A stretch of DNA of 64,000 bases from Trichosphaerium sp. ATCC 40318 (Eukaryota > Protista > Tubulinea), in NCBI GenBank assembly GCA_038496445.1, contig JALMLS010000287.1:124001-188000 (forward strand), given 5' to 3'. Positions 5,670 through 51,242 of the stretch are shown one piece after another. The position numbers and the translations under genes were made by a program. Below the pieces are notes generated by a model. The model made no database searches and was not told where the DNA came from. It was given only the letters and a program-made list of their open reading frames with translations. Position 1 is the first letter of the stretch. Each line of letters starts with the position of its first letter.

Positions 5670-6375
5670 AATGATGTACTCCCTCAATTGGCCTTGTCTA
5701 TGCCAACACTTGATCTCCTTATATGTTACCACGCATAATTACTCTGCTGTCTCAAGTTGACAATTGTCATACCAAACCTTTACTCTTCCAATTTACCATT
5801 GACATAATTACACTGTAGTTCCAATTGGCCATTGTCATGCCAACGCTTGTACTCTCCTTCTATTTTGCCATTCACATAAGTACACTGAGCTCTTAATTGC
5901 CCAATTCTGTACCAACACTTGTACTCGCCTTCTATTTTGCCATTCATATAATTACACTGCTCTCTTAATTGCCCATTTCTGTACCAACACTTGTACTCGC
6001 CTTCTTTTTTGCCATTCACATAGTTAAAATGCTCGTCCATTTGGCCATTGTCATACCACGACTTGTACTCTCCTTCTGTTTTACCATTCACATAATTAAA
6101 CTGCTCTCCCAATTGACCATTGTTATGCCAATGCTTAATCTCTCCTTCTCTCTCACCATTCATGTAACTGCATTGTACTAGCAGTTGGCCATTGTTGTAC
6201 CAACGCTTACTCTCTCCTTCTCTCACACCATTCATAAAATTACACTGCACTTGTAATTGCCCATTGTTATGCCAGTACTTGAACTCTCCTTCTCGGGTAC
6301 CATGTACATAATTTTTGTGAGAATACAAGTGTTTGTTACTATACCAACATTTCAGTTCTCCATGCCTTTTGCCAT
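5670..6375 (-). repeat. 72-bp tandem coding repeat array (about 8 intact units plus degenerate units beyond the stop codon)
   Basis: Units such as TTGTACTCGCCTTCTATTTTGCCATTCA recur at 72-nt spacing on the + strand. Degenerate units continue at 5670-5780 (..VWYDNCQL.., KEIKCWHRQGQLRE). Confidence 0.9.
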
Positions 6376-6668
6376 GTAAGAAGTATGCTTCTTTCTTTGC
6401 TATTAGCCTGAGGCTAGTGCCAATAAGTTTATACGTCCATTTACCATGTTTCTTAAACTCAAAGTCAAACCTTGAAGTAGTTGCTGTATGTTTCGATAGT
6501 ATGGACCACTTTTTATACACCTCATAGTCTAAATCGGTGATAATGAGATGTAATTCAACTGGAATGTTTAAAATATGGCAATGTTCGTCCTTCACAATTC
6601 TTAGCTATAAATGGAACGTCAGATAACCGTAGATAAAGAAAAAGCTTCACCTTTCGTTTAATCGCCAT
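5780..6668 (-). CDS. F-box-like + YwqK/MORN-variant repeat protein (family member 1)
   Basis: ATG at 6668 with one 46-nt intron (6605-6650) gives MAIKRKLRIVKDEHCHILNIPVELHLII (F-box-like), followed by about 8 24-aa repeats GKxEGEYKxWYxNGQLxxQCNYxN. Confidence 0.85.
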
Positions 6669-33400: not shown

Positions 33401-34630
33401 AATCTTCTCCTTACGCATAGCGTATGTACCAGAGGATATTACTGTAACAATTTCATCAAGATTTTTTATATTTGCTGTAGGTAATTCTATTGCTTTTGTA
33501 TTAGATAGCTCTGCATAATCTAAATTTACATTAATAACTATTTACATACTTACGAAATTGAAAAAAGATCATTTTGTGATGTTCATAATTTCGACATAAG
33601 GTGGAACTACTACACTCACACTCTATGTGTGGTAATAGACAAGTATTTGATGAAGAGTAAAGAGGTAAACAACACCAAAAAATAAAAATACAATACGCCT
33701 AGTAAGTATCGCATTGATCAGAACGTAATAGTTTCATTGATTTAGCGCGTGTTCCTTTTTTGATAAATTTTTTTTTGTGAATACTTATTCAATGCAAAGG
33801 CACTTACGCTCATCAATAAACCCGAAACCAGCTCCTAGATCGCTTGGTATTTGATCACTTCCCATTTGTATCTGGTGGTTACGTAGTTCTTCCCTACAAG
33901 CCTTCTGTCAATATTTCTTTGCATGTAAAAAAATAATTTTGGCGCGAAATGAGCGCCTATTTCTCTAAAGGCGTTTTGAAAATGCGACAAAAAAGAATTG
34001 ACAAGTACGCGGTAACCTTTCCGTACCATATCTCATGACACCCAGAAGGTTCTTGAAAGCTAAGTGCTAAATCTTCTGTATCTTCAGCGTCAGATTCTTC
34101 ATCCTTCGCTTGATTCCAAACGATGAGAGTGTCTACAATGCGTGTTGGTTTTTTATTTCGAAAAAAAAAAAATAGAAAGCTGTGAATGGGTTGAAAATAT
34201 CCGTGACTAATGACATGTGAGCCATCTACGCCAAAAATGCGAAAAAAACCATCAAACTAAGTCCTTGCTTTTTCAAAGCGTCGCGGAAAACTAACGGTTA
34301 CCCCAACACCATTTTCAGCCACTCCATGTTTCAAAAACGCGCACCTTGTTGCCGTTTATAGATATCTTCCTTTGAGATTCGTGATTTCAGGAGCATGACC
34401 TTTTCATCGTCCTCCGACACAACAAATATCACTGGCGATACGTTCTAGGTTTTTTGAGCGTGTACAGAGTCATTTTAAGCGTTTGGTAAATTATGAAACC
34501 ATTTTTTTCAATATGTCTGATAATGCACCTCTGTTTCAACAATAGTAACATAACCGGTGCCTTGATCGGCCCATTGACCATCCTCATTTAGTTTGTACAC
34601 CTTCACGCGGCGGTCGTTTGTCTTTTCCAT
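30450..34630 (-). CDS. PPP4R3: Protein phosphatase 4 regulatory subunit 3 (SMEK/PP4R3/Psy2)
   Basis: RRVKVYKLNEDGQWADQGTGYV (EVH1); DLALSFQEPSGCHEIW; IHLTFRLQYIKDVILAR; AALRFFR; YNLLNSAILELFEHI; YVSTFKSLKARYEQ. Confidence 0.95.
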
Positions 34631-42956: not shown

Positions 42957-45900
42957 TTACTTAAACCAAACGAATATATCTGGGTAATCATCAATATCTT
43001 CACCAGTCTTAACATCCTCGGCAGTAACCTCAACATTAAAGTAGCGTTGATTCTCCTTTAGTGTTATCTTAGCAATCTCAGGAACCAGCTCAGACAACCT
43101 TATTGCAATAAGCAACATAAAAAAAACAAAGAAAGAAAAAAAATAATCAATGCTTACTTTCTTGGTAGTCTAGCTGCACCCTTCCTGCCAAAGCATGTGT
43201 AAATCAATGCAGTACCTACACCAACCATTTGGGCATCCATTTGATATTTTTTCTAAAGCAAGTGTTAAACGTCAAACTCAATAAAAACCAAGTATTCAAA
43301 AAAATAAAAAACATACCTTGAGATAATTAAGGAACTGTTTCAAGGTTATATCACCTTGCTTGATATCAATGCGATCCCATAAGGTATAATGAGAGTCACG
43401 GAACTTGAGCTTCTCAGGAGCCAAAGGTTCAGATTGTTGGAAGACAGGTAATGCCAAATTGACAAAAGAGTTTCTGTATTGAAAGATTGTTTTATCTCCA
43501 TGGAATAACTAAAAGAACCCTTCGTTAACACATCATTTCTTATACTGAGACTTACTTTATAGAACTCTAAGCATACTAAACCAGTAACCAAAGCTGTAGT
43601 AGTAATCATAGCTGGCATGATACGACCAGCAATAAGCTTGGATTGCAATTGTGTTACCTTTTTTTAACAAAACAGTTAGAAACTAACTTGAAGCTTGGGA
43701 GGTTATAAAGTGCATGATGCACGTAAAATTATACGTACAGGTTTGATACCATAAGCAATTGCACGAAGATTAGAGGCAGCATGAATAAAATCGATGTGGA
43801 AGTTCGTGTCATCATCTTTTTCGAAATCGACTGGGTTAGTTCTGTACGTTGTTGAAGCTGGGTCAGGGAGCTCTTTCTCAATTCTAGCGATTTGTACATC
43901 ATCGTCATCTGCAGCTTCTCTATATAGAGATTAAACGACGCTATTGCAACGCAAAAATAAAGAGTGTTGTACAAACTAGCATTGTAGTACACTCAAAAAG
44001 GGTTGACTTGGTGGTTTTTGCTATCTTTCAACGTACACTACTTTTTCAGTGACACTCTCGTCAGTTTCAATCTTTACACCAACTTTTGGTTTCCATGCAG
44101 GAACAGATACAGAAGCAGCAGCCTTTGCAATACTAGCAGCTTGAGACTCAAAGTCTGAAGGCTTAAACTCAGAGGAAATGATGTTTAGCGTGTAAGCACG
44201 CAAGAAAGCTGCTGATACAACAAACTGAGCATGTATAGGATCATTAGGATCGAATTCTATTGCCTTTGGTGGTCTCTTTGAACCAGACCAGAAAGGTGCT
44301 AAGAAATTATTAAGTAAAATGAATAAACACGTGAAAATACACGTGACACGTGACAGGGCAAAAAAAGTCCAAATATGTTTGTGATGTACGTACCACCATG
44401 TGAGTCAACGTAATCCAATGGGAAATTATACAAGAGTTGTTTATGGTTCCAGTTGAATCTTTTTTGGAATTCGAGTCTAGCCCAAGCGATACAATCTTGG
44501 AACTCTAATTGACGCTCCATTAAGCAATCTTTGATGATTTTCAAGGTAGGTAACTTGAGATTTGGGCTCACAGTCTTTAACAAAAAGTCAAAATTTGGTT
44601 GGTTAAAAAAAAGGCAACTCACAGAAAGGTATCCAGGTTGCTCCAAGTAAGAGTTTGTGATGTCTGGATTCTTTACGAAGTGTCCTTCAAAGCAATCCTC
44701 CCTGCAAAAAAGTTAACTACTCACTCCTTTCCGTAAAGAGTGCAAATTTTCGAGTGGAAAAAAAAGTACCTAGCCCATTGCAAGCAATGTTCAATGTTGT
44801 TTGGGAAGGAGTGTAATAAGCAAATAGGTGTCTCCTTTGCTGGTGGATCAGTCGAAGATCCGTACGACTCTGTGAGATATGGTACAATAACTTGTACATT
44901 ACCCTTGGATCCAAGTGTACCGGAATCGACAAGTGGCTTTCTACAGGGTGAATAAGTATTTTGAAACATAAAAATAGGTTTTCTACGATTATTGCGTACC
45001 TGAAGAATACACATCGCCTGTCAATATAGAGACGAGCTTGTACGTTATCTACAGCATTGGCAACACCGTCGAGTTTCTCCCAAAACTCATCATGAAAGAC
45101 ATTTTCAGTCGAAGGTGCAACCTTTGTAGCAAGCGCTTCAATGTTCAATTCAGGGTTCATCTTCTTAACAGCAGCACAAGCTGTATTCGATTTCAATTTC
45201 TAGCACATGTATAAGCACACACAACCGATTAAAAAATAATCATTCTAAGCTTACTGTTACATCCCAACTGCGGTACAAGAACTGTCTGTTCAAGTTGGAA
45301 ATTTCAATAGTGTCCATATCAGTAACTGTTACTTTTCCTTTCGGACCTTGAGCCTTGTTAGTAACCACTACAACATAATACCAAGTATGATAGTGAACGC
45401 ACCACAACCAATACCCATCATTGCAAAGTTCTTAAGCATCTCACAACCAATTGCACCAGCACCAACTACAAAGTAGTTCAAGTTTAAGATTTTTTGGTTA
45501 TACTCATTTCCGAAAACAGCTATTTGACCGTCGTAGCGTGTGTTACGCTAGAAATATCAGTAACGGTAAATGCGTGTTTAAACATACTGGTTTAGCGTCT
45601 TCCTCAGTGATATCTTCAGTAGGGAGGCACTCGAGGTTTTCAGAGAACAAAAATTGGTTGATAGGTGTAAACTTATTTGTAGTAGCTTTGAGAACTTCTT
45701 GGGCTACAATACCACCAATAGATGCGGCCATTGGGTTCAAAGAACCTGCAGCAGTTTTTGCAAGATCCATGACAACCTTTGACAAAGACCTTTTAGTCTC
45801 ACCATCAGCCTAAACAATCACATTAGTAACCATGCGTTGCACCAAAAATAGTTGAAGGAAAAGAATACTGTATAAACCACGCACCACTGGAGATTCAGTA

Positions 45901-49196: not shown

Positions 49197-50132
49197 TTAT
49201 TTAAGTTTAACACCATCCTTAAAGATTGCCTCAGCAATCACGTTATATTGTTTATCCCATTCCTTGTACTCTCCATCAATTTTACCATTTGTAAATTTAC
49301 AACATTTAATGAGGATTCTATTGCCTTCACTATCGCTACACCATTCTTTTAATACCCCATGGATCTTACCATTCATATATTGCTTTTGATGTATTAAACC
49401 AGCATTGTACTTGAACTTTGTGTTTTCTTGTAATATTCCGTTTTTGTAAATACCTTCCTCAGTAATCATGCTTCGTAAATTCCAGAGTTTATACGGCCCA
49501 TCTAGTTTGCCATTTTTGTATGTTTTTTCATACCGCTTTACATAGGATTCCAACAAGCGCGATTTTCCGTCCAAAAAACCATTTTTGTAATTGTCAACTT
49601 TTTGAAATTCTATCCTGCCATTTGCATAGTTCTTTCTCGTCTCCTTCGCTGTACCATCAAGAAGGCCATTGACAAACTTACATTGATATGTTATCCATCC
49701 ATCTCGGTGGTAATGAACATAGTCACCATGGAGTTTACCGTCTTCATTGTAATTACATACAATCTTGACACCATGAGTGTCTTTATTTGTGTAATACACT
49801 TTGTTTTTTCCGAACTTTTTTCCTTCTTTGTAAGACAACTGCAAGCATAATCCCCAGTAATGAGTGGCATGGAAAATAATGTTGACATTTCCATCAAGCT
49901 TGCCATGTTTGTATTGGGCTGTAACATTGTAACCGGCAGTTGCAATCCAATCTTTGTTTCTGCGTGTAGAACAGTAGACCTGAATTTTAAACTTACCATG
50001 CTTTTGCAGTTTATTATCAAATCTAGATGTTGTCGCTGATTTCAAACAAAGCTCAGGCCATAGCTTTTTTACTTCAACATCTGTATCAGAAAAGAGCATA
50101 TGAACCTCAACAGGGAGATCCAAGAGCGTCAT
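49197..50132 (-). CDS. F-box-like + YwqK/MORN-variant repeat protein (family member 2)
   Basis: Intronless. MTLLDLPVEVHMLF..LWPEL..ATTSRFD..KHGK leader, then repeats YKHGKLDG, DGKLHGDYVHYHRDG, YKNGKLDGPYKLW, FTNGKIDGEYKEW. Confidence 0.88.
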   Translation of the reverse strand: MTLLDLPVEVHMLFSDTDVEVKKLWPELCLKSATTSRFDNKLQKHGKFKIQVYCSTRRNKDWIATAGYNVTAQYKHGKLDGNVNIIFHATHYWGLCLQLSYKEGKKFGKNKVYYTNKDTHGVKIVCNYNEDGKLHGDYVHYHRDGWITYQCKFVNGLLDGTAKETRKNYANGRIEFQKVDNYKNGFLDGKSRLLESYVKRYEKTYKNGKLDGPYKLWNLRSMITEEGIYKNGILQENTKFKYNAGLIHQKQYMNGKIHGVLKEWCSDSEGNRILIKCCKFTNGKIDGEYKEWDKQYNVIAEAIFKDGVKLK

Positions 50133-50177
50133 TTTACTAAAAAATCCTTTAGAGAACAAAGCCTACCTGCTTACTCA

Positions 50178-50993
50178 TCACGTGTACCTAACAGGTATAC
50201 AGTCTAGATCTACAACATCTTGTACTCTTACATATGGAAGTGGTATATAGCGTCCGGGACCTTCAAACAACCACTATCATAACGAAAAACTAATAAGTAA
50301 ATCGATACAAAGGTAAAATTAAACGCATTCAATCCTCACCTCATCTCCTTCTTTTCTGGAACACGAACCAATAGTAAAATCCTTCAAACATTGTAACTTA
50401 AGAGCCTTTCCTTTTTCTACAATTTGCAAGGGTGTAACGTCCACTTTAAGAACCTCTCCTTCGGACACAGTCAACGTTAATATTACTATAAATAGTTGTC
50501 ATGGTTTCAGACAGCCACGCACCTGGGTAGAGTGGAAAGGGGTCTTGTGAGTAGCGAACCTCTTCCTCACCTTTTCTTAGACAAAATGACCCAGACATTG
50601 ATTTCTTTAGTTGTGTTGGTGTAGGAATACGGGGAACGCAATTCAAGTCTCGGAATAGGTTCGCGTTTTCAACATTTCTAGTTAAGTAGCACACCTTTTC
50701 AAGCGCAACTTGAAAGTCCACTCTGTTTTGCGAATGATGTACTTTTATGATTTCTGTAACTACTGGGTTCTCAATGATGCAGTAGTGATCTTTGGGTATT
50801 TTAATCATTTGTTTAGGGCCACAAAGTAATTCGGTGTCCGCAGTTAACGTAATAGTCTTTGGTCCTATTTCTAGGCGTGGTATACGACTTTACAAGCGTT
50901 AGAGCTGTTTTTAGTAGTTGTCACGTACTAGCGTTTGTGTGCGACGAAAGCGTACTGAAATTCGGCTAGTATAACCTCCGTAAGCCCAGACAT
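50178..50993 (-). CDS. Truncated major vault protein-like gene (N-terminal vault repeats only)
   Basis: Three introns. Spliced: ..PRLEIGPKTITL..GPKQMIKIPKDHYCIIENPVV..GEEEVRYSQDPFPLYPGEVL..VTPLQIVEKGKALKLQCLKDF..EGDEWLFEGPGRYIP, then stop. Confidence 0.85.
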
Positions 50994-51242
50994 ACCTCAC
51001 ACAAAAACACAAAATTATGTTGGCTAACTTAAAAAGGTATTAAGTTGACAACGATTAATTGAAAGTCCAACTTTCAAAATGGAAAATATGCCACGGTTAA
51101 CGCTTTTGAGGTAACACAGTGTTGACGTTGGAAAACATAGCGTAGGTAACTAACTGAGAAGCTGTAACGAAGACTTTTATTAACCAAACATTCTCAACGT
51201 AGAGTGGCTGTCTGCAGTAACCACACGTGCGCTCGCTTCTTT

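Follow-up and report, generated by a model that had tools for sequence, protein, structure and literature searches.

The locus contains two open reading frames (ORFs) of the minus strand that follow each other closely, a vault-repeat ORF related to major vault protein (MVP) and an ORF coding for a MORN-type repeat protein. They lie in what we call the window, i.e. the whole 64-kb stretch of DNA that was analysed, whose GC content is 37.3%. This value, the short introns and the abundance of F-box/MORN genes agree with the draft genome published for Trichosphaerium (PMC10521059). The vault-repeat ORF runs from an ATG at 50993 to a TGA at 50180-50178, and a second TGA follows immediately (TGATGA, 50180-50175). 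It comprises four exons, the last of which occupies 50273-50181 when read through to the stop, and once spliced its 642 nt encode 214 aa. The three introns are of the GT-AG type, with all six splice sites canonical, and were placed by homology, conserved MVP motifs being restored across the junctions. Table 1 summarizes the features. Codon scores are coding-like for both ORFs (0.138 and 0.131 per codon), and frame-specific for the vault-repeat ORF. The similarity of exon 1 to MVP is weak, and a profile search gave no match for it; it was called because of its ATG, its strong GTACGTG donor and its right spacing to the GPKT motif, one residue different from the spacing in rat MVP. Intron 2 has an alternative in-frame acceptor at 50486. 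The original prediction had described an intact spliced ORF of MVP type, and this description was borne out, motifs and coordinates included.

Table 1. Features of the vault-repeat locus, in coordinates of the window. R1 to R3 are MVP repeats; a slash marks an exon-intron junction or the place where an intron interrupts a protein motif; splice scores come from a crude model, trained on unverified ORF-bridging GT-AG candidates of this one window.
Feature	Position	Strand	Details
Exon 1	50929..50993	-	ATG at 50993; 21 codons + 2 nt; N-terminal strands of R1
Intron 1, 41 nt	50888..50928	-	GTACGTG...AAAG; donor 8.6, acceptor 4.1
Exon 2, remaining R1 and R2	50523..50887	-	Motifs GPKT, HYCIIENPV, QDPFPLYPG; Vault_2 match; rat MVP 25-67 and 76-101
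Insertion of ~46 aa in R2, lineage-specific (or in-frame 138-nt GT-AG interval)	50605..50742	-	Absent from 39 of 39 aligned MVPs
Intron 2, 64 nt	50459..50522	-	GTGCGT...GAAG; restores PLYPG/EVL; donor 9.4, acceptor 5.5
Exon 3, first half of R3	50340..50458	-	Pfam Vault; rat MVP 103-130
Intron 3, 66 nt	50274..50339	-	GTGAGG...ATAG; restores GDE/WLFEGPG; donor 5.9, acceptor 2.5
Exon 4, second half of R3, to the candidate donor	50188..50273	-	Rat MVP 143-166, E 2.7e-7
TGATGA, stop of the unspliced 214-aa reading	50175..50180	-	Overlaps CACGTG palindrome 50179-50184
Candidate intron 4, 51 nt	50137..50187	-	AG/GTACAC...TTTTTTAG/; donor 5.3, acceptor 5.5, both among roughly the best 10% of sites
F-box-like N-terminus and MORN_2-type repeat sheet, 311 aa	49197..50136	-	Own ATG at 50132; stop 49199-49197

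Domain searches place the protein at the N-terminal end of MVP. Pfam Vault_2 (PF17794) was detected in exon 2 (E 2.5e-12), while the match to Vault (PF01505) is divided between exons 3 and 4 (E 2e-4 and 1e-2), each piece alone falling below the curated cutoff. With phmmer against the PDB, the four segments for which Table 1 gives rat MVP residues aligned to R1-R3 of rat/mouse MVP (E down to 2e-11), and the alignment to rat MVP ends at about residues 166-173, at the end of R3 and the R3/R4 boundary. Compared to canonical MVP (rat/human; PDB 4hl8, 4v60, 2qzv), R1-R3 are homologous, with Vault_2 and Vault in both, and the motifs GPKT, HYC..NPV, DPFPLYPGE and GDEWLFEGPG.YIP are common to the two proteins. 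Canonical MVP has nine repeats followed by a shoulder, a cap helix and a cap ring, whereas the fragment has three repeats and none of the rest; it also differs by some 46 extra residues in R2 and by the loss of 7 of the 14 conserved R1 residues.

The missing parts of MVP were looked for in the whole 64-kb window. Outside 50181-50993, a tblastn search with 113 MVP queries, some of them 400-614 aa long and containing R4-R9 (one, the 614-aa P0128, has the shoulder), revealed neither R4-R9, nor the shoulder (PF11978), nor the cap helix, and a profile built from 39 MVP N-termini found no further MVP exon in this window. Other parts of an MVP gene are therefore absent from the 49 kb downstream and the 13 kb upstream. 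An assembly break that removed the rest of the gene, named beforehand as a finding that could overturn the prediction, is ruled out, as the window contains no N and no match to R4 and beyond or to the shoulder. This means that the MVP sequence is limited to about the first three repeats, without shoulder or cap helix, as had been proposed. On known vault assembly, an R1-R3 fragment cannot form a shell. The claim that the protein would be incapable of closing a vault alone is thus supported: it has only 3 of the 9 repeats, no shoulder and no cap helix.

Elsewhere in the window, at 34490-34588 on the plus strand, we noted a short open piece resembling the extreme N-terminus of MVP. It carries the R1 motif H.(L/C).NN(S/T)N(I/V)T....GP.T, a motif lost from the vault-repeat ORF itself. 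With E values down to 1.7e-4 in tblastn (single queries) and of 1.2 with the profile, a second, decayed copy of an MVP 5' end was not established at this place, and the piece is either such a decayed fragment or a chance resemblance.

Residues 45-95 of the exon 2 query have no counterpart in MVP. They correspond to the insertion in R2, for which a length of about 40 aa had been anticipated and which amounts to about 46 aa. The insertion is stop-free and coding-like, with a codon score of 0.076 per codon in frame, versus -0.48 and -0.44 in the other two frames. A missed intron was considered, as the same segment forms a GT-AG interval of 138 nt (50742-50605), and rejected: its acceptor scores -1.1, its length is double that of the introns next to it and it scores as coding in frame. 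We keep it as a minor alternative only.

Downstream of the vault repeats lies the 311-aa ORF, which shares their strand and frame and begins with its own ATG 45 nt after TGATGA; the distance from the upstream gene to the ATG of the vault-repeat ORF is, in comparison, 250 nt. In Pfam, this downstream ORF itself gave only a weak match to SET7_N, and its homologues carry PF07661 (E down to 4e-13). AlphaFold2 predicted a sheet of beta-hairpins (pTM 0.71, pLDDT 86-98 in the repeat blocks and often above 90), and a Foldseek search returned MORN1 (6t4d, E 5e-7) and junctophilins. On these grounds we assign the ORF to the MORN_2-type repeat proteins, with a predicted single-layer sheet of tandem beta-hairpins. 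Its N-terminus is less clear-cut. No Pfam match to an F-box was found there, even at E values up to 10, and AlphaFold2 proposed two helices over residues 8-30 with pLDDT below 50, residues 1-38 being of low confidence as a whole. For the N-terminal 60 aa, the nearest atlas clusters were MORN_2/F-box clusters of Nucleocytoviricota, at a borderline language-model score of 0.90, and an F-box is present in 10-19% of the members of the nearest clusters (scores 0.87-0.90). Among the giant-virus-derived genes of the Trichosphaerium genome, the most frequent domains are F-box and MORN (Tekle et al. 2023, PMC10521059), which the putative label of F-box-like would fit. The downstream ORF has the MORN_2-type sheet in common with the giant-virus F-box and MORN proteins and their Trichosphaerium copies (PMC10521059), and two paralogues, B and C, are present in the same window. 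It differs in that its F-box goes undetected by Pfam, and no described member of these families has vault repeats.

Both paralogues are informative on the start of the downstream ORF. Paralogue B (52270-51243, minus strand) appears as two overlapping ORFs of 151 and 195 aa, which become one intact protein of about 323 aa once an intron of 56 nt (51893-51838, donor GTTCGT) is taken out. Its beginning matches the start motif of the downstream ORF, MT..L.LP.E; this common start indicates that the MORN gene was once independent and that its own ATG has survived. In paralogue C (region 5780-6660, minus strand), the main exon (5780-6595) has no ATG, and the start is supplied by a 5' mini-exon (MAIKRK) and a GT-AG intron of 46 nt located immediately before the F-box-like motif. 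The F-box-like/MORN family therefore does have short introns in this position.

We then come to the end of the vault-repeat ORF. TGATGA comes straight after a consensus-like donor, and the acceptor of candidate intron 4 lies 5 nt before the MORN ATG; in the window, the donor consensus is G/GTACGT and the commonest acceptor is TTTAG/. Removal of the 51 nt from 50187 to 50137 joins the vault-repeat and the MORN ORFs in frame into 524 aa. As scored by the crude model described in Table 1, both candidate sites resemble those of the three MVP introns supported by homology (donors 5.9-9.4, acceptors 2.5-5.5). A 45-nt version of the intron, with a donor at 50181 (AC/GTGATG), would also be in frame, but its donor scores only 1.0, which makes us prefer the 51-nt version. 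Bridges that are in frame and as good as this one were found at 1.5% of random window positions; with the donor regarded as a legacy of the parental gene for MVP, a suitable acceptor has a chance of 6%. Finally, the 45-nt gap between the ORFs scores as noncoding in all three frames, between two ORFs that score as coding. The termination at TGATGA that had been proposed is thus correct as far as the presence of the stop pair goes, and doubtful as the end of a gene, since the pair follows a good donor, lies so close to the next ORF and may be contained in an in-frame intron.

If the transcript did end soon after TGATGA, the product would be a stand-alone miniature MVP, a soluble R1-R3 protein of 214 aa that might bind MVP partners or vaults. 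The intact four-exon ORF, its coding-like codon usage and the conserved residues kept in R2 and R3 are all compatible with such a protein, and an AATAAA is present about 110 nt into the next ORF. However, the 3' UTR and poly(A) signal would then fall inside the next gene, and the stop comes straight after a good donor, with a good in-frame acceptor in reach. That N-terminal pieces of MVP are possible as stand-alone chains is known from structures solved on recombinant fragments (PDB 3gf5, 3gnf and 3gng, covering R1-R7, 387 aa for 3gf5; 1y7x, two repeats, 113 aa), but these are laboratory constructs, not natural genes. Natural short forms without the C-terminal part of MVP, with no known function, have been reported in Naegleria, jakobids and diplonemids (Zavrelova et al. 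2025, PMC12547018, Table S3), and in this the fragment described here is like them. They cover about 37-78% of TbMVP1, e.g. residues 4-393 or 12-754, compared to about 20% of MVP here, and none was reported as fused to another domain (PMC12547018). A conserved family of short R1-R3 proteins was rejected for the database matches that were checked: P0076, P0088 and P0061 each represent exon 1 of a longer MVP gene, on metagenome contigs of eukaryotes, and P0098, on a 2-kb contig, is uninformative on this question. Taken together, we consider a stand-alone miniature MVP to be unlikely.

To see how the repeats have evolved, conserved columns were defined as those at least 75% conserved in other MVPs, with 39 MVPs as the comparison set. 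Overall, the fragment keeps 35 of these 46 columns (76%), in the lower tail of the comparison MVPs (median 87%, lowest 69%). This retention is uneven. R2 keeps 17 of 19 columns (89%) and R3 11 of 13 (85%), which is typical of real MVPs, whereas R1 keeps 7 of 14 (50%), under all 39 comparison MVPs (minimum 57%, median 86%). Such a pattern suggests ongoing selection on R2-R3, with R1 released or changed, and it argues for the repeats being a selected part of a protein, as far as can be judged from residue conservation. In solved vault structures, the interface between the half-vaults is formed by R1. As this waist-forming repeat is the least conserved of the three, the pattern counts against competition at the vault waist, and the suggestion that the protein caps or competes there finds no support. 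A measure of selection by dN/dS would call for orthologues, and none were found in a word-indexed search, an exhaustive search of representatives or two metagenome scans. In the exhaustive search (1.84 billion representatives), the best match reached 68 bits, and the vault fragment is about 35% identical to any known MVP. AlphaFold2 on exon 2 alone, without an alignment, was uninformative (pLDDT 37).

The same data bear on a second alternative, namely that the locus is a relic without function. It would stem from a partial duplication of the 5' end of an MVP gene, would be transcribed little or not at all and would owe its intactness to chance or youth, and the bridge to the MORN ORF would be a coincidence. 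The failure of protein searches and metagenome scans to detect an orthologue, the loss of half of the conserved R1 residues and the low overall retention go in this direction, as do the fast-turning-over F-box and MORN families reported for the Trichosphaerium genome (PMC10521059). A search for RNA sequencing runs containing the 2.2-kb stretch yielded none, which was counted for a relic and against both the stand-alone protein and the chimera. Against it, at an identity as low as that to known MVPs, 214 codons are free of stops and frameshifts, and six splice sites are canonical; moreover the codon score is specific to one frame. The losses being restricted to R1, with R2 and R3 at the level of bona fide MVPs, they do not correspond to uniform neutral decay. 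A relic is in our opinion doubtful, albeit with some chance of being true.

The explanation we favour, with a probability of roughly one half, is that the vault repeats are the 5' part of a lineage-specific chimeric gene shared with the F-box-like/MORN neighbour. A duplicated 5' fragment of an MVP gene, extending from the start codon through exons 1-4 into the next intron, would have been placed directly upstream of an F-box-like/MORN gene. Splicing of candidate intron 4, with TGATGA inside it, would then fuse R1-R3 in frame to the neighbour and yield a protein of about 524 aa, with the MVP repeats R1-R3 followed by a short helical F-box-like segment and by the MORN beta-sheet. The 214-aa miniature MVP would in this case be the reading of an intron-retained form. 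By analogy with the domains located ahead of the F-box in other proteins of this class, R1-R3 might serve as a protein-binding or docking module, and not as a shell-forming element.

Several observations were counted in favour of the chimera: the same strand and frame of the two ORFs, the narrow gap between them, the quality of the donor and acceptor and the rarity of such a bridge in the window (1.5%, or 6% with an inherited donor), and also the noncoding character of the gap between two coding ORFs, the precedent of paralogue C and the retention of R2 and R3. The repeats and their intactness, the conservation of R2 and R3, the arrangement of the two ORFs and the quality of the splice signals are seen directly, whereas splicing of the candidate intron, expression of the gene and any function of its product are inferred. 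Other points count against the chimera. No protein combining Vault with MORN, or Vault with F-box, was found in 5.8 billion clustered proteins (word search) or in metagenome contigs; the ancestral ATG of the MORN gene is still present, within AAAATG, so that this gene could still be expressed alone; and the splice model is a crude one derived from one window. If the chimera is expressed, it could conceivably act as an adaptor of an SCF-type ubiquitin ligase, the vault repeats docking to vaults or to binders of the MVP N-terminus, but we regard this further step as quite improbable. If true, vaults and ubiquitination would be physically connected by a natural protein of an amoeba, which would offer a handle on the partners of the N-terminal repeats.

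Whether or not it is fused to the F-box-like/MORN protein, this three-repeat form of MVP is a new variation on the known short or derived forms. To our knowledge, no function of vaults has been established, and naturally occurring proteins built from only a part of MVP indicate which of its parts can live independently. Here, apparent constraint on R2 and R3, and not on the waist-forming R1, points to a binding role outside the shell. Should the fusion be real, the domain combination is one found nowhere else in our searches, and it would provide a testable link between vault repeats and a family of ubiquitin-ligase adaptors that was expanded in the amoeba from giant-virus genes. If the locus is not expressed, it would only be a by-product of the rapid gene shuffling in this genome.

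The palindrome that overlaps TGATGA is abundant in the window: CACGTG occurs 41 times, versus about 7.6 expected from base composition, and is often extended as ATCACGTGAT. It was considered as a marker of gene ends or introns, and the idea was abandoned, as its contexts failed to discriminate between the gene models. Other copies are found at 51224-51229 and in a cluster of three at 44328-44352.

Unusual arrangements were also encountered among the MVP-related sequences retrieved. The contig carrying P0061 (JGI sample 3300059473, 18.6 kb) has an MVP-like gene in two pieces, one of 112 aa (Vault_2) and one of 401 aa (Vault, Vault_4, Vault_3), in which no shoulder domain was called; a neighbouring gene of 525 aa has a weak match to an RRM of the PARP14 type. 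This may be another short MVP form, beside a PARP-related gene. Two library proteins, P0078 (594 aa) and P0082 (306 aa), show one match to Vault_2 each, after about 145-170 residues, and no other Pfam domain. They reflect either intron read-through in the gene calls or further non-canonical architectures of vault repeats.
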